Source: Prasinococcaceae sp. CCMP 1430
Lineage: Eukaryota > Plantae > Prasinodermophyta
Assembly: GCA_013416795.1 (NCBI GenBank)
Contig: RQSC01000482.1
Coordinates: forward strand, 57,911-85,686
Reading direction: 5' to 3'
Length of the DNA: 27,776 nucleotides
The translations under genes were made by a program, and so were the position numbers. Of this stretch, positions 31 to 27,327 are shown piece after piece; position 1 is the first letter of the stretch; each line of letters opens with the position of its first letter. The notes below the pieces were generated by a model. The model was given only the letters and a program-made list of their open reading frames with translations. It was not told the DNA's origin and did not search any database.

Positions 31-2102
31 ATGGCGAGGCGCGGCGCGGCGGGGTGGCGCGCGGCGGTCGCGCTGGTGGCGGTCGCCCTCGCCGCCCAGT
101 GTGCGCGGCTCGCGCACGCCAAGGTGTTCGAGCGTGAGGTCGCGCTGTCGTCGGTCTCCTCGGAGCAAAACCTCGCCAAGTTCTCGTTCTCGCAGGGTGC
201 CGAGGCCGTCGTGCACGGCACATGGCGCATCTCCGAGCGCAAGTACGGCCGGCGCGGGCGGGCGCGGAACAGGCAGCAGAGCTGGGTGCAGGGACGGCAC
301 GCGCTGAAGATTTACCTCTTCGACGACGAAGCCTTTGAGACCTTCAACAAGATGACGGCCGCAGGGTCGCTCTGTGACGAGCGCATGCACCTTGCGTCCG
401 CGTCGCGCGTGCTCAACGTCGCCAATGGCAACGCGGCCAGCGGGGGCAGCTCGCCGGCTGGCGCGCCGCCGATCCCCGAGGACCCCAACGGCTTCACGCT
501 GAAGCTGCCAGAGAACAGGAAGCGCTCGGAGTACTGGTACGTCATCATCGCCGACTGTCAGCTCGAGTGGTACGACGCGCGCAACCTGCCGCCGCTCGCA
601 GTGCGGCTCACCTTCTTCAACGACGGGCAGCACCTGCCCGCGGACGAGGACGGCCTGTTCGCCATTCAGGCGATAGTGCTCGTGACGATGCTGGTGGTTG
701 GGGGGATGCTCGGCGCAGTGGCGATCAATCAGATGGTAAAGGCGGGCAATACAGTCCACCTGCTCGTCATCGTGACCGCCGCGGCGTACGCCCTGCAGGT
801 GGCGAGCATCGCCTCCGAGCTGCTGCACCTCATAGTGTACGCGCGGGACGGCAGGGGGCTTACTTGGAGCAGCAGCTGGATCGCCGCGGACTTCTGGTCG
901 GAGGCGCTCGAGAACCTCAGCGAGCTGGTGACCATCTTCCTGCTGATATTCCTTGCGTGCGGCTGGACGACGACCACGGTTGGCTCTGTTGCCGAGACGG
1001 TCATGGCGGCGGTCGACGCGCCCTCCGGCAGGGTGGCGCCAAAGGCCGGCGCGACCGTCAAGCTCCCGGGGCAGGACAAGGCAGACGCAGCAAAGGAGGC
1101 CACCAAGGATCTCATCAAAGCGGCACAGAAGATGTGGCGCGAGGCCATGGAGGACAATGTCTTCAAGCGACGCGTGTCCGTGGTGGCCGCGGCGCTGCGG
1201 CGCCCGTACAGGATGATGTCGCGCGTTTCTGTGGGATCGGTGGCGGTGGCGGGGGTGGTGTTCGCGCATGTGGTGCTCACGATGCTGGGCCGGCGGTTGG
1301 ATGCGCGCGACGATCTCTTCCATCAGTTCCATGACCACGAGCACTGGCCGGGGCACGCGCTCGTCCTGATGCGCGTGCTGCTGTGGCTGGTATTCATGGC
1401 GGGTGGGTGGGCAACCAAGGTGCGCGCGCGCGAGCGCCGTCCGACGCGCGACCGCAAATACTGCCCAGTGATTACAAAACCCAGGGTTGAGCCGCCCGCG
1501 CCACGGCAGGGACGCTGTGAATTGCAGGTGGGCCTGAGCACGGGGCGCACCCGCCGCCGACACGACGCTGTGAATTGCAGCGCGCGTGCCTCGGTGTGCA
1601 TCGGCGGGGTGAGACACCTAATTGTATGAGAACTGAGGGCAAAGCGGGTGCCATGGCACCGCGCTTGTGTGCGGACCATTGCTCGCACGGGTTCCAGCCG
1701 TGCGCCGCGCGCCGTGGCGCTTGCCGTGCCGCTGACGCCTTGCCGGCGCTCGCTGCCCTCCACGCGCCGCGTCGCTGCTCCGTTCGCGGGCATTTTGGAC
1801 CGCAGATCGGTGCCAGGGGCAGCCAGAGTGTGACCGCGTTCCTCGGCGCGCTCACCATCGTTGGGACGGCGTGGATGCTCGCTTTCCCGCTCGCTGTGTT
1901 CACGGCGGGCATGGTGACGCAGACGAGGCGCCATGCGTACATCACCGTCGTATCGCTCCTCCTCCAGTCGGGTGCGCTGATGGGGTTGACGGTCCTCGTG
2001 ACTGATGAGCGCTTCCGCACGATGTCGACACTGGCGGTTGAATCGGACTCGCTCGACACCAAGCGCGACTCGCGTGGCAGGCCCAAGGTGGCGGTCGACT
2101 AG
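31..2102 (+). CDS. GPR180/TMEM145-like protein (signal peptide, luminal domain, 7TM); exons 31-1419 and 1806-2102
   Basis: Hydrophobic N-terminal signal and a luminal YWYVIIADC motif, followed by hydrophobic helices with GWT after TM3. Donor AAG|GTGCGC at 1420, branch GCTGAC at 1731-1736, acceptor CGCAG at 1805. The phase-0 join restores the last TM helices (IGARGSQSVTAFLGALTIVGTAWMLAFPL), about 561 aa. Confidence 0.78.
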
Positions 2103-4811: not shown

Positions 4812-6787
4812 TCACACCGCGAATGAGCGCACGCGCTCGGAGATGTCTATGCGGCATATTGGGCACTCGGTGACGCTGTAAGCGCACCTCTGGCAGAGCA
4901 TCGTGTGCCCGCACGGCCGCAACAGCACCTCGATATCGTTGGCCATGCAGATCCTGCAGAGGCGCGGGTTGGGGTCGCCTTCGCCTTCGCCGCCGCTCTT
5001 AGCCTCGCGCCGCTGCTGGTTGAGGATGCGCAGGCGCGGGCCCTTGGGCAAGCCGAGCTCCTTCAAGTCTTCTTCGGACATCATCATGATGAGCTCCCGC
5101 GAATCCACGCGCTCTCCCCTGAACGTGTCAACGTACGCGTGCAGCTGCAGCGACTGCAGCCAGCGGCGCACGTCGGCGAACGCGCGCTCGAAGGCGTCGT
5201 CCGGCGCGCTTGCACGGTGCGGCCGCGTCTCCGACGCCCCGGGCGCCGAGCCTGACCGCGCCCGCGAAGGTGATGACGATGCTGACGATGCGTGGCCATC
5301 CCCCCGTGCATGCGCGTCGCCCTCGGTGCTCGCGCCCGTGTCCCCCGTGGTGGGCCCTCCCGCGGTGGCCTTGAAGAGGCCCGCTCCCTTGTACTTGCCC
5401 GTGCCCTTGAGCTTTTCGGGCACGGGGATCGCCATGTTTACGTCGATGGACCCGTGCGTGTACGCTCCAGAGGTGCCGGGGCTGGTGGTTTTCGAGCCGA
5501 TGCCGCTGCTTTGGGCGGCCGCGCGCTCTGCTGCGGCGACCGCTGCGGCGGTCGCACCTGCGGGTCGTTGCGCGCCACATGCCGCGCAGAAACGGTCGAG
5601 AATGTGGTTGTTGAGCGTGCAATTGCTGCAGGCCCACACGCTCTCCGCGGACTCATCCACGCCGTCGGGCGGTGCGCCAGGTGGGGGCGCGGACACGGGC
5701 GAGTGCATGGCGGCGGAAGCCAACGCGAGCGTCCTCTCCTCGGCGGCATCCTTCTGGACCTCAAATGCATCCGCGTCTGCGTCTTTGTTCCTTGCGCCGC
5801 CGCTGGGTGAGGTTGGGTTGCTGCTGCCCATTCTCTGAGACGAAAGCCCGGGCTAGGGGCGAGCGCCGCACGCGGCGTCTTGTCAGCCCCACGGCATGCA
5901 CGCACTCTCGCGCGTGCGCAGAAGCGCCGGCGCGGCTCTCTCACCTTGTCCCAAAATGCGTTCTCGCCGTCGCCCTTGGAGCGATTGAGCGATTCGAGCA
6001 GCTTGCCCTCTGCGTCTTCGCTCATTTCTTCCATTATGGCGGCCGCCGCATCCGCGCGCGACTGCATGGCGAGGTATAGATACTGCGCCGCCTGCATCAG
6101 GCGCGGCTGGTGCGACACAATCACCTGGAAGTCCACGTACGACAGGCTCTGCCGCCGCCCTGCGAGGTCGTCCACCTCCTTGCGCAGCTGCGGGTCCGAT
6201 CGCACCACCTGGCTCCATTCCTGGTTGCCCGCGCCCGTTTTGACCTCCTTCAACGAGCGCCGCACCTTGGGCTTGACTTGCGCGCGCACGCCTTTGACGA
6301 CGCGGCGCACCTTGGGTGGCGCGAGCGTGTACTTCGAGGGGTCCGTGCGCAGCGCGTTCTTGAGCGCCTGGTAGAGCTCGTCCTTGTCCAGCGTGCCATC
6401 ACCGTCGAGGTCGAAGAGCCGATACGCGAACTGCACCACGCGCTCGAAGTCCTCACTCGCAAACTTGCTCAGGCCGTAGACAAACTCGCGGAAGCCGACC
6501 TGCCCCGAATTATCGAGGTCAAAGATGCGCACCAGGCGGTTGGTGTAGGCGTCGCGCCCGAGGCCGAGCGCCCTGCAGAAGCCGTCGTGGTCCAACTGCC
6601 CTTGGGCGTCGGGCACGCCCTCGTAGTAGATGTCATACACCTCCTCGGCGAGCTCGCGGTTGACGCCCGCGTCGCGCACTAGCCAGTTGAACGAATGGCG
6701 CCGCTTAGGCTCGTACTTGCGCGCCCGCGCCGCCCCAGCCCGCCCCCCGCCGCTATGCTCCGCAGCCGTCGAGCACCCGGATCCCAT
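4812..6787 (-). CDS. predicted N-acylated calcineurin-B-like EF-hand + NZF (RanBP2-type) zinc finger + SAM + RING E3 ligase; exons 6787-5945 and 5834-4812 (about 621 aa)
   Basis: Starts MGSGCS. EF loops DLDNSGQVGFRE and DLDGDGTLDKDE; NZF WACSNCTLNNHILDRFCAAC; SAM VRRWLQSLQLHAYVDTF..EEDLKELGLPKGPRLRIL; RING CRICMANDIEVLLRPCGHTMLCQRCAYSVTECPICR. The intron 5944-5835 is GTGAGA...GCTGAC...TCTCAG and is phase 0 on both sides. The domains are secure; the fusion depends on the predicted intron. Confidence 0.82.
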
Positions 6788-6843
6788 CGCCGCCGCGCGC
6801 CACGCGCGCCGCCGCGTCACCACGGCATCTGCCCCTCCCCCCC

Positions 6844-6874
6844 NNNNNNNNNNNNNNNNNNNNNNNNNNNNNNN
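6844..6874. other. assembly gap (31 N) flanked by C-runs
   Basis: N run in the sequence. Confidence 1.
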
Positions 6875-7249: not shown

Positions 7250-9316
7250 ATGGCAGGCGGCGGCCGCGGCGGTGGTGGCGGCAGCGGCGCGAGTGCGGGC
7301 GGAGGCGGCGCGGTCGACATTGTCGCGCAGCTCGCCCGACGCGGCGTGCAGCTGTCCCCGTCGCACCGCACGGGCGAGTGGACGCGTGCGGTGTGCCCCG
7401 CGTGCGAGGGCGGCTCGACGGGAGAGCGCTCCCTCGCGGTCTACGTCGACGACGGCGGCGCGCACTACCACTGCTTCCGCGCGAGCTGCGGGCACAAGGG
7501 CACCATCGGCGCGCCCTCGGCGTCGGGCGAAAGGAGTGGGAGCGACGGCGGGGCACAGTCGAGCGGCACTGAGGTCGATGTGGACGCTGCCGAGCGGCGG
7601 CGCGCCGAGGCTGCGCGGCCGCAACCGTCCCTCCTGCCCCTCAACGAGAAGGCGCTCGCGTTCTTCGCGTCGCGACACATCTCGGAGGCGACGCTTCGCG
7701 AGGCGGGCGTGGCGATGGAGCGCGTGTACTCGCCGCCGGCGGGCGAGCACGTGAGGGCCATAGCCTTTCCGTACTACTACGACGGCGAGATCGTCAATAT
7801 CAAGTACCGCGGTCCTCAGAAGACCTTTTGGCAAGTCAAGGGCGCGCTCAAGGTTCTCTACGGCATGGAGGGCGTCAATCCCGAGGACGACTCGGAGCCC
7901 TTGGTCATCGTGGAGGGCGAGATGGACCGACTGGCGCTCATCGAGGCGGGCGTGCGCGGCGCGGTGAGCGTGCCCGACGGCGCGCCGCCGAAAGCGAAGG
8001 GAGGCGCGCTGCCGCCGCGCGAGCGCGACACCAAGTACGAGTACCTTTGGAATTGCCGGCAGGTGCTCGACACGCGCAAGCGCATCGTGCTGGCGACGGA
8101 CGCGGACGGCCCGGGGCGCGCGCTCGCCGAGGAGCTCGAACGGCGCGTGGGGCGCGAGCGATGCTCACGCGTGCGCTGGCCGGAGGGGTGCAAGGACGCG
8201 AATGACGTGCTGGTGGCGCACGGGCCCGACGCGCTCCGCTCTCTTATCGACGAGGCGAAGCCCACTCCCATACGCGGGCTTTTCGATTTCAGCGCATTTT
8301 CGGACGAGATTGACGACTACTACAACCTCGAGGTGGGCGAGGAGGAGCGAGGCATTTCGACGGGCTGGAGTGCGTTGGATGATATATACAAGGTGGTACC
8401 CGGTGAGCTCACTGTTATCACAGGCGTGCCCAACTCTGGCAAGAGCGAGTGGCTTGACGCGCTCTGCGTCAATCTGTGCCTGTCGCAAGGGTGGAGCGTT
8501 GCCATGTGCTCAATGGAGAACCGCGTGCCCGACCACGCGCGGAAATTGCTTGAAAAGGCGGTCGGGCGCACGTTCTTCGAGCCGGCGCGGCCCCGTCCTG
8601 GTGGCGGGCCTGGGCGCATGTCGGCCGGGGAGCTTGAGCTCGGAAAGCAATGGCTCAACGAGCACATATACCTGATCAGATGTGAGGATGATGTGCTGCC
8701 TTCAGTTGATTGGGTGCTGCAGCTCGCGCGCGCAGCGGTGTTCAGGCACGCCGTGCGCGGGCTCGTGATAGACCCGTACAACGAGCTCAGCCACCAGCGC
8801 CCCTCGTCGATGACCGAGACTGAGTACGTGAGCCAGATGCTCACTAAGGTCAAGCGCTTCGCGCAGCACAACAAAGTGCACGTATGGTTCGTGGCGCACC
8901 CGCGACAGATGCACAACTACGCTGGAGAGCCGCCTTCGATGTACGACATCGCTGGCTCGGCACACTTCATCAACAAGGCCGACAACGGCCTGGTGGTGCA
9001 CCGCGTTCCAGACTCCAATGAGGTGCAGATACTCGTGCGCAAAGTGCGCAACAAGAACGCCGGCACGCAGGGCGAGGCGTCGCTGTACTATTCGCACGCC
9101 ACAGGCACGTACTCGGACAACCCGGACATGTCCAAATCCATCGATCAGATCCTCGGAGCCGAGGGCAACGTCGGTGCAGGGGTCGAGGGGCTTGGCGGTG
9201 GGCGCAGGCGCGCCAATGGCGGCCGAGTGAACGGGGACGGCAGTGACAGCGGCGGCGGCGGCGGCGCGCCGGAGCAAGTGCCGCCGCTACCAGCCGAATT
9301 CTTGCCACCCTCCTAG
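7250..9316 (+). CDS. TWINKLE: Twinkle organellar DNA primase-helicase (plant type); the N-terminus may be incomplete
   Basis: Zn-binding domain CPACEG...HCFRASC; TOPRIM motifs LVIVEGEMD and VLATDADGPG; SF4 helicase Walker A GVPNSGKS, Walker B LVIDPYN and FVAHP. Uninterrupted 688-aa ORF. Confidence 0.96.
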   Translation: MAGGGRGGGGGSGASAGGGGAVDIVAQLARRGVQLSPSHRTGEWTRAVCPACEGGSTGERSLAVYVDDGGAHYHCFRASCGHKGTIGAPSASGERSGSDGGAQSSGTEVDVDAAERRRAEAARPQPSLLPLNEKALAFFASRHISEATLREAGVAMERVYSPPAGEHVRAIAFPYYYDGEIVNIKYRGPQKTFWQVKGALKVLYGMEGVNPEDDSEPLVIVEGEMDRLALIEAGVRGAVSVPDGAPPKAKGGALPPRERDTKYEYLWNCRQVLDTRKRIVLATDADGPGRALAEELERRVGRERCSRVRWPEGCKDANDVLVAHGPDALRSLIDEAKPTPIRGLFDFSAFSDEIDDYYNLEVGEEERGISTGWSALDDIYKVVPGELTVITGVPNSGKSEWLDALCVNLCLSQGWSVAMCSMENRVPDHARKLLEKAVGRTFFEPARPRPGGGPGRMSAGELELGKQWLNEHIYLIRCEDDVLPSVDWVLQLARAAVFRHAVRGLVIDPYNELSHQRPSSMTETEYVSQMLTKVKRFAQHNKVHVWFVAHPRQMHNYAGEPPSMYDIAGSAHFINKADNGLVVHRVPDSNEVQILVRKVRNKNAGTQGEASLYYSHATGTYSDNPDMSKSIDQILGAEGNVGAGVEGLGGGRRRANGGRVNGDGSDSGGGGGAPEQVPPLPAEFLPPS

Positions 9317-13578: not shown

Positions 13579-16500
13579 ATGGGCGCTGGCGGCAACGGGG
13601 ACGGCGGTGGCGAGAGCGGGAAGGATGTGGCGCGCGTTGGGACGAATTGGTCTCCGCCGCACCACGGCCATGCACGCCGCGAAGACTGGGCAAGCGACGA
13701 CACCGACGGCCAGAAAGGCCCCGAGAAGATACGCGCGCTCGGCGCTACGCAGGCGCCGGGCAGCAGAAACGGCAACGGCGGCGGCGGCGACGACGCGGCC
13801 GGTGCGACGTCCTACCAGCGAATCCGGAGCGTCGAGCGCAAGGTCCCCGCCGACACGCCGTCGCGAGGCGTGGCGCCTGCGGCTGCCGTGGACGGCGCCC
13901 ACGCCCACGACGATGACCACAACCACGCTGTGCACCTCCCCGGCGAGGCCAACCTGCGCAAGGAGCGAGCACTCAGGATGGTGCGCGCGCGCCCTGCATC
14001 AGCGCGCATGCCGCCGCACCCAAAAATACATTGACCCGGAGCACGCCGGGCGCGCGCGCGCGCTCGTTCGGGGAACTGAAGCGCCCTTTCTGAATCATTG
14101 ACCTGGGAACGAAACATCTGACCCTAAACCTCAAACCTCAACACTCAACGCTCAAACACTCAAACACTACCCCCCCCCCCCAGGCGAGCGTGACCATCCT
14201 CGCCGCGCTGGGCTTCGGTCTCTTGGTGCTGGTCGACAAAGACGCTTTCCTCCCGGACTCGCCGGCGTTTGCCACGCTCGTCGTATGGGCCACAGCGCAC
14301 GCGGCGGGCTCGCTCGTCGGCGCGTGCGGGCTGCCGCCGCTTCTCGGTATGCTCATGTCTGGCATCGCACTCAAAAACATCGGCGGCGTGGTCGACGGCT
14401 TGACGGAGGGCTGGAGCGCGGCCATACGCGCGATGGGGCTGAGCGTGATCCTGATGCGCTCCGGGCTGGAGCTCGACTTCGCGGCCTTCAAGCGCGTTGG
14501 TCCCGCGGCCGCGCGGCTGACGGCCATGCCGGGCATCACCGAGGCAGTGTCAATCGGGCTGTTCTCCATGCTGCTCTTCAACATGACGGGGAAGGCCATC
14601 TGGCTTGGCCTCACGATGGGCTTCATTTTGGCGGCTGTCTCCCCCGCTGTGGTGGTGATTGGCATGTTCGAGCTCCAGCGCAAGGGCTACGGCGTGGCCA
14701 AGGGCATTCCGTCGCTAGTGGTAGCGGCTGCGAGCTTCGACGACGTGCTGGCCATCTCGGGCTTCAGCATCTGCATGGGCCTCGCGGTTCCGCACGGCTC
14801 GCTGGCGTGGACCATCGCGCACGGCCCGCTCAACCTGGTGTTTGGGATGCTGGGTGGCCTGCTGGGCGGCGCGCTGCTGTCGGTGACGACGTTGTGGAAC
14901 TCGCGATGGAAGCGTAGCGCGTCGACCTTTGTGGTGGGGATGATTATCATGTTCATGGGCAAGAAGTACCACTTCACAGGCGCAGGGGCGATGGGCTCGC
15001 TCATCACGGGAATCTTCGCGGCCATGGGCTGGCAGAATGGCTGGGGCGAGAAAAGGGGCCTGTCGAATGGCCCCATGGAGGTCTACAGCCACGACGTGGA
15101 GCATGACCTGGCAGTCTTCTGGAAGGTGGTTGCGCAGCCGCTGCTCTTTGGCGTGATTGGCGCCGCGATCGACTTCGACACGCTCAACGCCAACACCCTG
15201 CCGCGAGCAGTAGGCATCGTGCTCATCGGGCTGTGTGGGCGCTTGCCCGCCGCGTATGCCGCCGTGGGGCGCGCGGGGCTCAATCACATCGAGAGATTGT
15301 ACATTGCGCTGTCGTGGGTGCCGAAAGCCACCGTGCAGGCAGCGCTCGGCAGCGTGCCCTTGGACATCGTGCGCGAGTACATGTACCCCGACGGCGGCAG
15401 TTCGTGCACGGAACACGAAGATGCGGCCGATTCGGCCGAGTGCGACCAGTACGAGCGCTGGGGAAACGAGATTCTCACCACGGCCGTGCTCTCGATCATC
15501 ATGACGGCGCCCGTGGGTCTCCTGCTTATCAACGGACTGGGGCCGCGCTGGCTGGAGCGCGAAGAGACCCACAGCGAGAGCGCCTCACTCAAGGGCTCAT
15601 GCGACAACCTCGAGACGCTTGACCAGCATCAGGGGGCGGGCCGCAAAGACAGGACGGGAAACGGCGGCTTCCCCAGTGCGGGCGGTGGCGCCAATGTCGA
15701 AATGGGCGAGATCTGCGTCGAAATCAGCGACGGCAATGACCGGATCGAGAGGGCACCCGGCGAGGACGAGTCGATGCGGGGCTTCGCGCCACTCACACGA
15801 TCGGTCATGCGACGCGTGCCGCGGCGCCACCGCCGGTCGTCCATCAAGGCCATCCAGTTGGCACGCCAGCTGCAGCGCGAGCAGCACCAGCACGGACACA
15901 CGGTACACGCAGGGCAGATGGCCAGGGCGTTCAATCGCAGCAAGAGCAGCGGGGATGAAAGCGACGATGGCGAGGGGGGAGGCAGGACAGGGCTGGGTGG
16001 GCGGCGCGGTGGCGGGGGCGGCAGGCGGCGGTCGAGCCTCACGCCGCTCATGCGCGACATGACGACGCAGCTGAGTGAGCTGCAGATGATTGCAGCTTTC
16101 ATGGAGCTGCAGCCGGGCGTGCCTGACTCGCAGGTCGAGCGAATGAAGTCGAACATCGAAGACATCAAGCAGAACCTGCGCACAATGTCGCAGCGCCCCA
16201 CCGTGCACGACGAGATGAGCACGCGGCAGTTCTTCAAGCTCGCACACCCCGTGGGCGGCATGCCGCGCCGACGCGCGGGCGACGGCGCCCGCATGCGCGT
16301 CTCGCTGACAATGCACGCTGGCAGCGATGCGGAGCGCTCAGACGCCACGGAGAATGTCAACACTACGCGGCTGCGTCGCGCCTCGAGCAGTGGCGGAGAT
16401 AGGGCAGCCGCGGCAGCGCGTATGAGGCAATCGATTGACGTGGACCCGCGCCTATCTACTAGCTCGGCAATCTCGGAGTTGTCCGACGAAATGCAGACCG

Positions 16501-16712
16501 AGTCGGACCACGAAGGGTCGGGGCGCTTCAGCCGAGCGGGCGGCTGGCGGCCGCTGGCGCGTAGCGGGCGCAGCCCGTCGTTCCTGGCTCTCGAGCATCG
16601 GCTCGAGCGCGCTGCGGAGATCGCGCGCGCCGAGGCCGAGGAGGCTGAGGCCGCCGTCGCGCAGGCGCAGGCTGCCAGTGCCGCCGAGGAGCGCCTCAAA
16701 ACGCGCCGGTGA
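13579..16712 (+). CDS. SLC9B/NHA-type (CPA2) Na+/H+ antiporter with a long disordered C-tail; exons 13579-13980 and 14184-16712 (about 976 aa)
   Basis: Family motifs LPPLLGML, VILMRSGLELD, AAVSPAVVV, GYGVAKGIPSLVVAAASFDD (DD ion-binding pair), PLLFGVIG and WVPKATVQAALG. Donor ATG|GTGCGC at 13981 and acceptor polyC-CAG at 14183, phase 0. Confidence 0.9.
14121..14170 (+). repeat. degenerate heptamer array (ACCCTAA/ACCTCAA/CACTCAA) at an intron 3' end
   Basis: accctaa acctcaa acctcaa cactcaa cgctcaa acactcaa acactac, followed by a C-run and the CAG acceptor. Confidence 0.7.
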
Positions 16713-20860: not shown

Positions 20861-21625
20861 NNNNNNNNNNNNNNNNNNNNNNNNNNNNNNNNNNNNNNNN
20901 NNNNNNNNNNNNNNNNNNNNNNNNNNNNNNNNNNNNNNNNNNNNNNNNNNNNNNNNNNNNNNNNNNNNNNNNNNNNNNNNNNNNNNNNNNNNNNNNNNNN
21001 NNNNNNNNNNNNNNNNNNNNNNNNNNNNNNNNNNNNNNNNNNNNNNNNNNNNNNNNNNNNNNNNNNNNNNNNNNNNNNNNNNNNNNNNNNNNNNNNNNNN
21101 NNNNNNNNNNNNNNNNNNNNNNNNNNNNNNNNNNNNNNNNNNNNNNNNNNNNNNNNNNNNNNNNNNNNNNNNNNNNNNNNNNNNNNNNNNNNNNNNNNNN
21201 NNNNNNNNNNNNNNNNNNNNNNNNNNNNNNNNNNNNNNNNNNNNNNNNNNNNNNNNNNNNNNNNNNNNNNNNNNNNNNNNNNNNNNNNNNNNNNNNNNNN
21301 NNNNNNNNNNNNNNNNNNNNNNNNNNNNNNNNNNNNNNNNNNNNNNNNNNNNNNNNNNNNNNNNNNNNNNNNNNNNNNNNNNNNNNNNNNNNNNNNNNNN
21401 NNNNNNNNNNNNNNNNNNNNNNNNNNNNNNNNNNNNNNNNNNNNNNNNNNNNNNNNNNNNNNNNNNNNNNNNNNNNNNNNNNNNNNNNNNNNNNNNNNNN
21501 NNNNNNNNNNNNNNNNNNNNNNNNNNNNNNNNNNNNNNNNNNNNNNNNNNNNNNNNNNNNNNNNNNNNNNNNNNNNNNNNNNNNNNNNNNNNNNNNNNNN
21601 NNNNNNNNNNNNNNNNNNNNNNNNN
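20861..21625. other. assembly gap (765 N)
   Basis: N run in the sequence. Confidence 1.
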
Positions 21626-22652: not shown

Positions 22653-24701
22653 CTAATTCCCGCGGTACTCAGCGACTTCATCCATCATCAGCGTGCGCAT
22701 GGACAGGTCATCGCTGAGCTGCACGGTCGCCTCACCACTGTCGGAGTGTCGCTCGATGAGCTGCGCGACCTCGCCACGATGTTCTCCCTTCACAACGATG
22801 ACACGACCTCCGCGCTTCGGCAGAGCGGTCTCGAGCGAGCGCTGCGGCACCTCGTGTACGACGGTGTCGCCGTTGCCACTGAGCATGGAGAGCGTGGCCT
22901 CCTCGGGTCCTGTCACGTCCAACACGCAACCCTTCTGCAGGTAGAGCTTGCCTTCGGCCAACCGCTTGGAGACGACGCGCACGACGATGCCCGGACGCAA
23001 CCAGGCGGCGTCACGCGGTGGCGGTGGCGGCGGCGCGTGGTCGCGTTGGCTGCGATCGCGGCGATGGCGGTCGTCTCGGTCCGACTTGTGTCGCTTGTGG
23101 CCGCGCTCGCGGTCTCGGTGCTCTCGGTCGCGCTTGTGCTCACGCTTATGTCTACTTCTGTCCCTGTCACGGTCCTTGTCCCTATCGCGGTCGCGGTCGC
23201 GGTCGCGGTCGCGGTCGCGCCCATTGTGCCTGTCGTGGTCCCTATCGCCACCGCGGTCTCGTCTCCCGCCGTCCAAACTCTCGTCGCGATCGCGCCCTCT
23301 AGCCTCCACGCGCGCACTCCCCTGCTCCGCACGGCCCTCGCCAGGAAGTACCGGCGCATCTGCGTCCGACATCTCTTCCACCTTCACACGAACCGCATCA
23401 CAATCGGCGGCAGCAAATGCTTTTGCCCTTGGAAGAGCCTCGGCCTCGGCAGCGACGGCCTTCGCCCTCGCGTCGGCCGCGGCCGCCTCTGCAGCCGCCT
23501 CTGCTTCCGCCCTCGCCTCCTCGCGCTTGGACGCCTCGCCGATCTCGCCCAGCTCCGAACAGCGCACGCGCACGGTCGCGCCCGAGCCTACGAGCGTCAC
23601 CAGGGCGCGGTCGGAACGCCCTTCCTCCTTGACGACCTCGTTTACCTCGCACGTCAGGCCCGAGTGCGGCCCAGCGACGACCTCCATCGTCTTGCCCACC
23701 GCCGCGCCACGCACAGGCGCCTTCGTGAGCTTCTCATCGAGGCGCCGCACAGAGCGCATCGTGCCCTCAGCGACCATCATCTCTGCGGGGCCGCGCTTCT
23801 CGCCTGGCTTGATGAAGCGTTTCTTTTTGGCTTGGCCAGTCGCCTCGCGCAGCGAGGCCAGCGTGTTGGGGTCGGCGCCTAGGCCGAGCTTGTCGGGGCG
23901 CTTGAGGTACTCAACCGGTGCCGCAGGGCCCTTGCCGCTTCGACCCACTGCCATTCCCTTCTTCCATCCCATGCCGCGAAGCATCGCCAGCCCGAAGTCT
24001 TCCACCGGCATTGCCTCGTACTGTGCGAGCGTGGCGACCTCGGGGAGGTCCTCAGCATCCTTCCCGCCCCTGGGCGCCCTGCCGCCGAACGACGGTCGCG
24101 ACGGCTGCGCCGCCGCCGCAGGGTCACCGCTAAAATGCTGCTGCTGGTCATTCCCAGACTCCCGCTGCTGCTGCTGCGGCTGCTGCGGCTGCTGCTGCTC
24201 GGCTTTCTTCCTCTGCTCCATCCTTTCGCGCATGTTGTTGAGTCCGTACTTCACGTCGGGGGCTTGCGCCACCTCATCGGCCTGCGCTGCCTCGAATCTG
24301 TCCGCCGCTTTCTTTGCCGCCGCCACCGCCCCCTCCGCGCCGCCGGCAGTCTCACCCACCGCCGCTGCGGCAGCGGCCTCCGCTTCAGCGTACTTCTGCT
24401 GGAGCTCGGTGGCAGGGTCCCACGTGTTTGGTAGCGCCTTGATGACTTTCGGCTGCTTCTTCGGCTTGGCACCCTCGGCTGACTGCAGCACGCCCCCGGA
24501 TAATCCTGTGACAAGCTCCTTGACATCACCATCGCTCTCTGCCCGCGCAGCTGCCGCCGCGCCGAGGAACGCGCGCGCAGCCGCACCGGCGGGCGCAGCA
24601 GCCGCCGCTGGCTTCTGCACGCCCTGCCTGCCGCCACCGCTGCCGCCAGGGCCGAGGCTGAACCCGAACGCGACGCGCGCGGGATGCTCCTCCTCTCCCA
24701 T
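22653..24701 (-). CDS. MOS2: G-patch and KOW domain splicing factor (MOS2/GPKOW/Spp2 family)
   Basis: G-patch VEDFGLAMLRGMGWKKG...RPDKLGLGA; KOW motif VVAGPHSG; RD-repeat tract; C-terminal Kin17-like KOW module WLRPGIVVRVVSK...LETALPK.GGRVIVVKGEHRG. 682-aa ORF. Confidence 0.92.
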   Translation of the reverse strand: MGEEEHPARVAFGFSLGPGGSGGGRQGVQKPAAAAAPAGAAARAFLGAAAAARAESDGDVKELVTGLSGGVLQSAEGAKPKKQPKVIKALPNTWDPATELQQKYAEAEAAAAAAVGETAGGAEGAVAAAKKAADRFEAAQADEVAQAPDVKYGLNNMRERMEQRKKAEQQQPQQPQQQQRESGNDQQQHFSGDPAAAAQPSRPSFGGRAPRGGKDAEDLPEVATLAQYEAMPVEDFGLAMLRGMGWKKGMAVGRSGKGPAAPVEYLKRPDKLGLGADPNTLASLREATGQAKKKRFIKPGEKRGPAEMMVAEGTMRSVRRLDEKLTKAPVRGAAVGKTMEVVAGPHSGLTCEVNEVVKEEGRSDRALVTLVGSGATVRVRCSELGEIGEASKREEARAEAEAAAEAAAADARAKAVAAEAEALPRAKAFAAADCDAVRVKVEEMSDADAPVLPGEGRAEQGSARVEARGRDRDESLDGGRRDRGGDRDHDRHNGRDRDRDRDRDRDRDKDRDRDRSRHKREHKRDREHRDRERGHKRHKSDRDDRHRRDRSQRDHAPPPPPPRDAAWLRPGIVVRVVSKRLAEGKLYLQKGCVLDVTGPEEATLSMLSGNGDTVVHEVPQRSLETALPKRGGRVIVVKGEHRGEVAQLIERHSDSGEATVQLSDDLSMRTLMMDEVAEYRGN

Positions 24702-25085
24702 CGCCCCCTACGCGCCCCTCCCGCGCACCCCCGCCCGCCCCCCAGCCCGCGCACCGCAGGCCCCCCGCGGCAGCGCGCGGGCGCCGCGGCGGCCGACGGA
24801 TTCCGATTCCACCCGCGCGTCGCCGCGCGCCGCCGCGCGCCGAACCCGGAACCCAGATGGATTCCGGGGACGACCCAGGTGGAATCCCCGAATCCTGGAA
24901 TCCGGACTCGAGGAATCCCGGGCCCCTGCCCTTCCGTTGCCTTCCTTGCCCCCCCCCCGGCCGGAGCTCCCCCCGCGGCCCAGCCGCCGCCGCGCGATCC
25001 TCGTCGAGGCGGGCCACCCCGCCGGCGCGAGGGCTTGGCCGGCTGCGGTTACGGCCGCTCGCGAGCGGCGCTCGCCGCTCGCGCG

Positions 25086-27327
25086 ATGCCGCGCGCATCG
25101 AAGAGCGCGTCCGCCGCGAGCGGCGGCAGCTCGGGGGGCGGACGCGCCAAGTGCGTGGGGGCGCCGACGGTGTGGAGCGAGGATGAGGACGCTAAGCTGC
25201 GCGCGCTCGTCGCCGAGCACGGCACCAAGTGGAGCGAAGTCAGCCGCGTGCTCGGAAGGTGCGCCGGCACGCGCTGCGGGCCGCGCGCACGCGCCAATGC
25301 GCACCATAGCGCCAATGCGCACCATAGCGCCAATGCGCACCAGCGCGCGCCAGCGCACTCGCCCACCCATCCGCTCACCAATCACCCCCATGCTCAATCC
25401 CCCCCACCCCCCCACACTCACCCACCATCACCACCGCCGCCAATAACAACACCAACACCAACCACAACAACAACTCGACTCGACTCCGCAAACACGAGCA
25501 GCAAGGGCCCCAAGCAGTGCCGCCGCCGCTGGGGCAACCACCTGAACGCCAACAACAAGACGGAGTCGTGGTCACCCGAGGAGGACGCCACCCTACTCGA
25601 GGGGCACGCGCGGCTGGGCAATCGGTGGACGGAGCTGGCGCGCCTCGTGGGCGGGCGCACGGACAACGCCGTCAAGAACCGCTTCGACGCGCTCGCGCGC
25701 AAGCGCAAGCGCGCCGAGGCGCAAGGGGCCGCGGCGGGAGGTGCGGATGCTGGGGGGAGCAAGGCCAGCGCCCTCGAGGCGAGTGGCAAGGCCAACAACA
25801 CGCCGCCGCCGTCGGCTGCCGGCGCCGCCGAGGGCGGCGCGGAGCGGAAAAAGGCCTCGGCGGAACAGTCAAGTCCGGAGAAGAGAAAGACGAAGGGCGG
25901 CCTCGCGGCCGCGAAGCCAGCGTCCACGCTCCCTCCGCTGATGGCCAGTCGACAAAAAAGCCTGAGCATCCAGATCCCCTCGGCCCCCCACGCGCCGCCA
26001 AGCACCGTGGTGACCAACGCCTCGGGCGTGCCCGTTGTGGCGGGGTCGCCCGTGCCGCCCACGCTGGCGACGTACCTGCGAACGCAGCTCGCCCAGCTCT
26101 CGCCGATGGACCTGCGCTCGATGGGCGGCATGGGGTCGCCCGACCTGGCGCAGCTCTTCTCACTCTTCGGCGCGGGCGACCTCGACCACCTGCCCAGCGC
26201 CGACCGCCGGGCGCAGCACGTGGCGGGAGAGACCGCGGCATGCGGCGGCAGGGGGGGCACGCAGGCGCCGAGCGCCGCCGCCGCCGCCGCGGCCTCCGAC
26301 CCCGCGGACCCCGCGCAGATGCTGCCCGCGCAGACGCCCGCGATCGACCCCGAGGAGGTGATGGGCTGGCTGCGCGCGATCACGCCGCGCGCCCAGAGCA
26401 CCGGCCGCTGCAGCGGGCCCGAGAGCGGCGGCAGCAAACGCGGCGCGAGCAGCACGCCGACGACCGCCGCCGCCAGCGCGGGGGTCGAGGGCGGCGGCCG
26501 CAGGAGGGGCGAGGGAGCCGGCGGCAGCGCGAGCGGCGCCTGCCTCGGGCTCGGCGCCGCCGGCGCGTCATCGTCCGTGCAGGGCANNNNNNNNNNNNNN
26601 NNNNNNNNNNNNNNNNNNNNNNNNNNNNNNNNNNNNNNNNNNNNNNNNNNNNNNNNNNNNNNNNNNNNNNNNNNNNNNNNNNNNNNNNNNNNNNNNNNNN
26701 NNNNNNNNNNNNNNNNNNNNNNNNNNNNNNNNNNNNNNNNNNNNNNNNNNNNNNNNNNNNNNNNNNNNNNNNNNNNNNNNNNNNNNNNNNNNNNNNNNNN
26801 NNNNNNNNNNNNNNNNNNNNNNNNNNNNNNNNNNNNNNNNNNNNNNNNNCGCGGCCGCGGCCGCAGCGCGCGCGCGCGCGCGCGCCGCAGGCGATACGAT
26901 ATGTACCCTGCAATCCACATATCATCACATTGAAGCCCTATTAAAAAACCTCAAGCACAGTATCTGGCGGCGCCTTTGTGTGACGCGCCGATCGCCGCGC
27001 CTGCGCAGCGTGGCGAGCCTCACGCGCTCGGACGCGGCCGCGGCCGCCCCCGTGGCGTCCAGCCCCGCCTTTTCGGCGCGCGAGGCGCACATGCTGCTCA
27101 ACGCCCTGGGCGCCGACACGGAGGGCCTCCTGCAGCTCGCGGCGCAGCCGGTGGGCGAGCCGACGCTGGCGGCCGACGCACCGATAGCGCCCGGCGCGCT
27201 GGACAGCGAGGACTCGGAGCAGCAGGCCCATCCCGTGTCGTCGGTGAGCTTCGAGTTCCACGCGCCCCCGACGCCCATCAGCGCCAGCGTGTTCTCGCCG
27301 CGGCGCTCGCCGAGGACGGCGCCGTGA
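25086..27327 (+). CDS. R2R3-MYB transcription factor, FLP/MYB88-like; exons 25086-25258, 25502-(gap at 26587) and probable last exon 27009-27327
   Basis: R2 WSEDEDAKLRALVAEHG.KWSEVS...KQCRRRW and R3 WSPEEDATLLEGHARLGNRWTELARLVGGRTDNAVKNRF. Removing the intron 25259-25501 gives normal R2 spacing. The last exon follows a TGTGAC...CGCAG acceptor, and its linkage crosses a gap. Confidence 0.88.
25291..25342 (+). repeat. 18-nt tandem repeat (GCGCCAATGCGCACCATA) x2.9 in MYB intron 1
   Basis: Units at 25291-25308, 25309-25326 and 25327-25342. Confidence 0.95.
26587..26849. other. assembly gap (263 N)
   Basis: N run in the sequence. Confidence 1.

Follow-up and report, generated by a model that had tools for sequence, protein, structure and literature searches.

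In plants and algae Ca2+ signals are decoded by sensor-kinase pairs or fusions, as exemplified by CBL-CIPK and CDPK. In CDPK and CCaMK the Ca2+ sensor is fused directly to its effector, and this effector is a kinase. Among the RING-type ubiquitin ligases (E3s), ZNRF1/2 and MGRN1 are N-myristoylated and have no Ca2+ sensor, and c-Cbl carries a single EF-hand which is a structural part of its phosphotyrosine-binding TKB domain, not a calcineurin-B-like sensor. Here we describe a gene on the minus strand (4812..6787) of a 27,776-nt stretch of contig RQSC01000482.1 from Prasinococcaceae sp. CCMP 1430 (the whole stretch is called the window below; GC content 68%), the predicted product of which joins a calcineurin B/CBL-like EF-hand module to a RanBP2/NZF-type finger, a SAM domain and, at its C-terminus, a RING. 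The arrangement is analogous to CDPK and CCaMK in the fusion of sensor to effector, and to ZNRF1/2 and MGRN1 in its putative lipid anchor. In this work we have analyzed the structure of the gene, its relatives and its encoded domains. The locus is best explained as one nuclear gene with two exons, from a marine green picoalga of high GC content, and, as judged by sequence comparison, the fusion is conserved as a small family and is not unique to this genome.

Gene structure

The coding region extends over 4812..6787 (minus strand) from the ATG to the stop, including one intron, and is alignable end to end with P0016, a protein found in the search described below. Exon 1 (5945..6787, minus strand; 843 nt, 281 codons) starts with the ATG at 6787, gives a product beginning MGSGCS and encodes the lipidation motif and the EF-hand module; its last residues, AFWDK at 5945, coincide exactly with a conserved F-x-D-K/R motif. 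Exon 2 (4812..5834, minus strand; 340 codons and the TGA stop at 4812-4814) begins with RMGSSN and encodes a linker, the NZF finger, a second linker, the SAM domain and the RING. The extent of exon 1 is supported by the conserved end motif, by the GC content at third codon positions (GC3) and by the variants found in population sequences, and that of exon 2 by Pfam matches and GC3. GC3 is 0.86 in the frame of exon 1 and after the intron switches to the +2 frame, where it is 0.82; the intron itself shows no periodicity (GC by codon position 0.75/0.75/0.69). In the gap-free contig L012 there is a stop in frame upstream of the ATG at 6787, and no other ATG of this frame stands between the two.

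The earlier note on this DNA, made from its letters and a list of open reading frames (ORFs), had joined two separately called ORFs into one gene. All the elements that it named (the MGSGCS start, the GTGAGA donor, the GCTGAC branch, the CTCAG acceptor, the phase 0 join and both halves) are present in the sequence, and with its acceptor the phase 0 join of the two exons yields 621 amino acids with 0 internal stops. That this is one gene is borne out by the uninterrupted ORF of the orthologue and by complete MMETSP transcripts among the relatives. The exact 339-amino-acid ORF of exon 2 had no record in an exact-product look-up. A 24-mer across the predicted exon-exon junction found no match in JGI metagenome contigs, a result which says nothing about splicing because a 20-mer of the intron was equally absent, so that this collection does not contain the locus.

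Eight TARA and Logan contigs (L001 and L008-L014) matched the window collinearly at 99.1-99.6% identity, and the intron was kept in 8/8. They were rejected as evidence on splicing, all of them being genomic with the intron retained. Five of the six variants in exon 1 lie at third codon positions, as do four of the eight in exon 2, where the remainder fall in disordered linkers; indels were seen only outside the coding sequence, and the 110 nt of the intron held 0 variants, too few sites to use. Since the variants of exon 1 are mostly at third positions and the indels lie outside the coding sequence, the pattern fits a functional, not a decaying, gene.

The intron as delimited in the earlier note (5835..5944, minus strand; 110 nt, GTGAGA..tctCAG) is missing from the orthologue, the ORF of which runs on unbroken at this place, and is present in 8/8 population contigs. 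It contains a candidate branch point, CTGAC, at intron positions 59-63 (5882..5886, minus strand). When all GT..AG pairs that join both frames without a stop were enumerated, the donor at 5944 was found to pair with two good in-frame acceptors, CAG at 5835 (110 nt) and ccccTAG at 5853 (92 nt), which lie 48 nt and 30 nt, respectively, from the branch-point A. With the TAG at 5853-5855 as acceptor the 18 nt at 5835..5852 (minus strand) would be exonic, otherwise intronic; they add the six residues PGLSSQ, giving the junction WDK|PGLSSQRMGS. The intronless orthologue reads PFWDKPGRSGS at this place (DNA AAG CCG GGC) as against AFWDK|RMGS in the window. The TAG acceptor agrees no worse than the CAG with the orthologue (WDKPG) and with the distance to the branch point. 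Of the proposed boundaries the donor at 5944 is firm, and the acceptor at 5835 proved to be one of two viable choices. The product has 621 amino acids with the CAG and 627 with the TAG, and its architecture is identical with either. As the two acceptors are only 18 nt apart, they may also serve as alternative acceptors that add or remove PGLSSQ.

The intron was absent from every relative examined and is therefore lineage-specific; the intronless orthologues make it a clean case of lineage-specific intron presence. When compared by blastn with the whole window as a check for introners, it had no second copy in these 27,776 nt.

Relatives and conservation of the fusion

The exon-2 protein was used as a query against 1.84 billion representative proteins. 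P0016 (620 amino acids), the closest orthologue, is 57% identical to this query, contains EF-hands, finger, SAM and RING, and is collinear with the window protein across the splice junction. P0165, a near-identical member of its cluster, comes from genomic contigs (up to 29 kb) of marine metagenomes, on which its ORF of 1863 nt runs without a break. Five further proteins, P0017 and P0203-P0206, have 555-600 amino acids, the same domain order and about 40% identity in the sensor half. The clusters of the relatives include the MMETSP transcripts P0236, P0250 and P0251, the entries of the last two being labeled 'type:complete', which places the four domains on one mRNA in relatives. Of two MMETSP fragments, that of Mamiellaceae sp. 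RCC2288 has 71% identity with another relative, P0019, and that of Nephroselmis pyriformis spans the sensor half; the window protein is about equally distant from the Mamiellophyceae and Nephroselmis sequences.

The earlier note named no family with this architecture. A small conserved family turned out to be present in public data already, and no paper describing it was found. Some of the relatives bear the IMG name "serine/threonine-protein phosphatase 2B regulatory subunit" and none of the members has a curated name; this label and the split ORF calling conceal the ligase half. A protein combining EF-hand + SAM + RING, or CBL-like + RING, was not found described by full-text literature searches, nor in a survey of the RING E3 ligases of plants, a review of plant EF-hand proteins or a census of the CBL family that includes the 'MpCBL' genes of Micromonas; this census makes no mention of a RING. 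A SAM-RING cassette is carried by 12 of the 47 other long proteins whose RINGs are most similar, and the 25 families listed for them, of 52 matched, include no EF-hand family. Other partners of SAM-RING in other protists are MORN, ankyrin, FHA and kinesin.

One relative (contig L002, 6001-7742) is called as two ORFs of 436 and 144 amino acids, with a frame change between finger and SAM. Other contigs of its 90% cluster carry an uninterrupted 582-amino-acid ORF (P0204/P0222), and the frame change probably stems from an error in assembly or from a frameshift of the strain.

N-terminal signal and calcium-sensor module

The N-terminus MGSGCS (6770..6787, minus strand) corresponds to the N-myristoylation consensus, with Gly2 and Ser6, and Cys5 is a candidate palmitoylation site. 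The window sequence MGSGCST fits the pattern G-{EDRKHPFYW}-x2-[STAGCN]-{P}, in that position 3 is uncharged, position 6 is small (Ser or Thr being preferred there) and position 7 is not Pro. Gly2 is found in 7/7 family proteins with an intact N-terminus and the myristoylation pattern fits 6/7, with a Cys within the first 11 residues; the other fitting N-termini are MGN.TS (P0203-P0206), MGCYGS (Nephroselmis) and MGCCLS (RCC2288). It is conservation that suggests N-myristoylation of the protein and, probably, its S-acylation. Of the lipid anchor claimed earlier, the motif holds, Gly2 is conserved, and one family member departs from the strict pattern (see below).

The EF-hand module contains four loops. 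EF1 (6581..6616, minus strand; VPDAQGQLDHDG), identified by HMMER alignment to the first EF-hand of calcineurin B, is degenerate, with Gly at loop position 12, and its region is conserved as P-D-x-x-G-Q-L-x-H. EF2 (6485..6520, minus strand; DLDNSGQVGFRE, residues 90-101; Pfam EF-hand) and EF3 (6377..6412, minus strand; DLDGDGTLDKDE, residues 126-137; Pfam EF-hand_1 at residues 118-144) are canonical. In 15 sequences D90, D92 and E101 of EF2 and D126, D128, D130, D134 and E137 of EF3 are invariant, and this conservation supports the earlier proposal of Ca2+ binding, which the module would effect through EF2 and EF3. EF4 (6131..6166, minus strand; LAGRRQSLSYVD) forms a helix-loop-helix in the structural model and is degenerate, being devoid of acidic ligands at loop positions 1, 3 and 5. 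Between EF3 and EF4 there is a Lys/Arg-rich insert (6197..6349, minus strand; residues 147-197), predicted to be disordered from a predicted local distance difference test score (pLDDT) below 50 at residues 157-190; alignment gaps show that its length differs among lineages. EF4 is followed by three extra conserved helices (5990..6106, minus strand; residues 228-266; pLDDT 83-92), and L237, L263 and R269 are nearly invariant in the family alignment.

Pfam EF-hand_1 was matched twice above the gathering cut-off (45.7 bits). By sequence, the PDB chains that match best are those of calcineurin B (query residues 60-146), namely the chain of a calmodulin-calcineurin fusion (E 1e-19) and stand-alone calcineurin B chains (E 6e-14 to 3e-13). 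An AlphaFold (AF2) model of the sensor half built with 15 family sequences has a four-EF-hand fold (pLDDT 74; predicted template modelling score, pTM, 0.73), and Foldseek, at a probability of 1.0 and a TMt of 0.6-0.74, matched it to calcineurin B, SOS3, CBL2, CHP1, calaxin and NCS proteins. The sequence and structure searches agree with the previous assignment of a calcineurin B/CBL-like module with two canonical loops.

Finger, SAM and RING domains

The RanBP2/NZF-type finger (5562..5645, minus strand; pLDDT 73-91) reads W-x-C-x2-C-T-L-x-N-x6-C-x-A-C-G, and the signature W-x-C-x2-C-x3-N-x6-C-x2-C is found at residues 348-367 (WACSNCTLNNHILDRFCAAC). Pfam Zn_ribbon_RanBP gave 16 bits with the window sequence alone, below the cut-off of 27. 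The pattern W-C-C-T-L-N-C-A-C-G is invariant in seven family sequences, and a profile of these seven matched in PDB Nup153 (E 8e-7), the HOIP NZF (4e-5) and TAB2, TRABID and Npl4 (1e-3 to 5e-3), which shows it to be a true RanBP2/NZF finger. It may hold ubiquitin or another partner.

The SAM domain (4992..5204, minus strand) was recognized by Pfam as SAM_1 (43 bits) and SAM_2 (38 bits), has a pLDDT of 89-97 and matched SAM domains in Foldseek. The C-terminal C3HC4 RING (4815..4967, minus strand) is of the IAP/IDOL type, ends in VRSFAV and scores 47 bits with Pfam zf-C3HC4_3 (cut-off 27). All eight zinc ligands of C-x2-C-x11-C-x-H-x3-C-x2-C-x6-C-x2-C are present and invariant in 16 sequences. 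It aligned with cIAP1 (6hpr) over 49 residues (E 1e-10), including the E2-contact and linchpin positions and the aromatic tail known from dimeric IAP RINGs (C-x-I/V-C, C-P-I-C-R and the R-x-F tail), and Foldseek gave cIAP1/2, XIAP and BIRC7 with TMt 0.70-0.78 as well as IDOL, these structural matches being dimeric RINGs. Modelling of the C-terminal half (pTM 0.34) gave confident structures for finger, SAM and RING (pLDDT 73-97) and disordered linkers. The domain order proposed in the earlier note, EF-hands, NZF, SAM and C-terminal RING, was thus recovered by Pfam, the finger profile and Foldseek; the IAP type of the RING was upheld by the cIAP1 alignment and the Foldseek matches to IAP RINGs, and the likeness of the C-terminus to LRSAM1 by the Pfam order of SAM and zf-C3HC4_3.

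Proposed function and alternatives

The reading which we favor, and regard as rather probable, is that the gene encodes a membrane-anchored, Ca2+-switched and self-associating RING E3 with a sensor-responder logic. N-myristoylation and probable S-acylation would place the protein on a membrane. Binding of Ca2+ at EF2 and EF3 would open the hydrophobic groove of the sensor, as in calcineurin B, CBLs and CHPs, and the open groove would either free the module's own C-terminal helices or take up an amphipathic helix from a substrate close to the membrane. The active E2~ubiquitin-binding unit would be formed by SAM domains associating with one another and by RINGs that dimerise through their tail, with the finger possibly holding ubiquitin or some other partner. 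Such a sensor-responder E3 would be the counterpart in ubiquitination of what CDPKs are in phosphorylation.

Several observations weigh against this picture or parts of it. The Ca2+ dependence of ligase activity, the location at a membrane, the polymerisation by SAM and the E3 activity itself are inferred, and splicing rests on signals, frame and comparison, not on a transcript of this gene itself. The acceptors CAG 5835 and TAG 5853 are equally viable, so that the product may have either of the two lengths given above. In the orthologue P0016 (MGNGCV) position 6 is Val, which violates the strict myristoylation pattern. The finger has an invariant T-L and an Ala as against T-F and Met/Val in ubiquitin-binding NZFs, and the best PDB match of its profile is the Ran-binding Nup153, with L-L/L-V at those positions; the ubiquitin-binding triad of Npl4 consists of T13, F14 and M25. 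Finally, P0019 has no finger, and P0012 has neither finger nor SAM and consists of sensor and RING alone, which indicates that finger and SAM are dispensable in some lineages and that the sensor-RING pair is the conserved core.

The long disordered linkers and the pTM of the C-terminal half predict no allosteric contact, two of the four EF loops are degenerate, and none of the computed results addresses switching; all this would suit a constitutive E3, in which the EF module binds Ca2+ structurally only, like the EF-hand of the c-Cbl TKB domain, or acts as a fixed binder of substrate or membrane. However, the two canonical loops have stayed invariant among lineages that are only about 40% identical overall, and the nearest relatives of the module (calcineurin B, CBL, CHP and NCS) bind their targets in a Ca2+-dependent way, so we hold a constitutive ligase to be unlikely, though still a serious competitor. 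A calcineurin B orthologue (PP2B regulatory subunit) with an accidental C-terminal extension, as the IMG name of the relatives and the best sequence and fold matches could suggest, is scarcely credible: the module has only two canonical EF loops, an insert of about 50 amino acids and three extra helices, and the NZF-SAM-RING extension is conserved across the family. Green plants are not known to possess calcineurin A.

It is also conceivable that the 110-nt element is retained, which would leave the gene disrupted or expressed in two parts: the EF-hand protein, prolonged out of frame, and an NZF-SAM-RING protein starting from the ATG at 5831. This ATG stands 3 nt past the acceptor of the earlier note, prokaryote-style callers split the locus into ORFs of 461 and 339 or 209 amino acids, and a spliced transcript was not found, although the search was uninformative in a collection without the locus. 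Retention is nevertheless very improbable in view of the GT..AG boundaries with GTGAG, the CTGAC branch point and the pyrimidine-rich 3′ end, of a read-through that would add about 170 out-of-frame residues in a frame whose GC3 across exon 2 is 0.63, and of orthologues that are single ORFs or single transcripts; both halves are moreover intact, with purifying selection on exon 1 in the eight population contigs.

Under the favored reading of a Ca2+-switched membrane ligase, it is possible, albeit doubtful, that this is the first calcineurin-B/CBL-type Ca2+ sensor built into a RING E3, with a membrane Ca2+ signal converted into ubiquitination by one polypeptide. Equally tentative is the accompanying proposal that the fusion is conserved in early-branching green algae, comprising the window's lineage, Mamiellophyceae-like plankton and Nephroselmis (at least the sensor half). 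If true, a Rosetta-stone reading predicts that separate CBL/CHP-like sensors and SAM-RING E3s cooperate in other eukaryotes. Should the EF module gate the RING, the family would provide a compact, genetically simple model of membrane Ca2+-controlled ubiquitination in ecologically abundant picoalgae.

Genomic neighbourhood

The gene is divergent from a Twinkle-like primase-helicase (Toprim + DnaB_C; 7250-9316, plus strand), from which it is separated by an intergenic region of about 460 bp. No conserved synteny was found: the neighbours of the orthologues are La, GHMP kinase and SUI1 (L004) and HIT and SEP-UBX (L002/L003) as against the Twinkle-like helicase in the window. A gap of 31 N (6844-6874) is found 57 nt upstream of the coding sequence. 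In contigs L012-L014, 6875 is joined directly to 6843, inside a G-rich run, and the gap appears to hold no missing sequence. An ORF of three codons (ATG CCG TGG TGA; 6817-6828, minus strand) precedes the main ATG by about 40 nt, out of frame, and may act as an upstream ORF if it lies within the 5′ leader.

A Na+/H+ exchanger gene is located 7 kb away (14190-16709, plus strand). Animal CHP proteins, relatives of the EF module, bind NHE exchangers; the proximity is probably a coincidence because the orthologue loci show no such neighbour. Other neighbours recognized by Pfam are a GPR180/TMEM145-like membrane protein (31-1626, plus strand), a GPKOW-like G-patch/KOW splicing factor (22656-24701, minus strand) and an R2R3-type Myb (24684-26930, plus strand). 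Runs of N occupy 20861-21625 (765 nt) and 26587-26849 (263 nt), and the dip in GC to 0.28 at 21-22 kb, which coincides with the 765-nt run, is probably an artefact and not an AT-rich island.

Comparison with known systems

The ligase half has likenesses among several E3s. Its RING is best matched by those of cIAP1/2, XIAP, BIRC7 and MYLIP (IDOL), with which it shares the extreme C-terminal position and the R-x-F tail (VRTFLS in cIAP), whereas the window protein has no BIR or FERM domains. As in LRSAM1, the animal LRR-SAM-RING E3, the SAM domain directly precedes a C-terminal zf-C3HC4_3 RING, but the family protein has no LRR (Pfam, E up to 1) or coiled-coil and has a different N-terminal sensor. 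The presence of a RanBP2/NZF finger and a ubiquitin-ligase domain in one polypeptide is shared with MDM2 and HOIP, the NZF1 of HOIP being the second-best PDB match of the finger; the surrounding domains are unrelated, and HOIP belongs to the RBR ligases and not to the simple RINGs. EF-hand and RING occur in one E3 also in c-Cbl, of which only the RING was aligned in the sequence search.

The N-terminal module resembles the sensors calcineurin B, CBL (SOS3) and CHP in fold and sequence, in the MG with a nearby Cys and in the non-canonical EF1. It differs from them in that only EF2 and EF3 are canonical, in the basic disordered insert and the three extra helices, and in being fused to an E3 tail, whereas theirs pairs with a phosphatase, kinase or exchanger. 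The FPSF motif of plant CBLs is not in the exon 1 product, and the module ends instead in a conserved G-F-x-D-R. Calcineurin B is a stand-alone protein of about 170 amino acids with four canonical loops, as compared with a module of about 270 amino acids followed by 340 more residues here; the two are alike in fold, with the Foldseek probability of 1.0 and a TMt of up to 0.74, and in the myristoylation signal, MGSGCS in the window protein.

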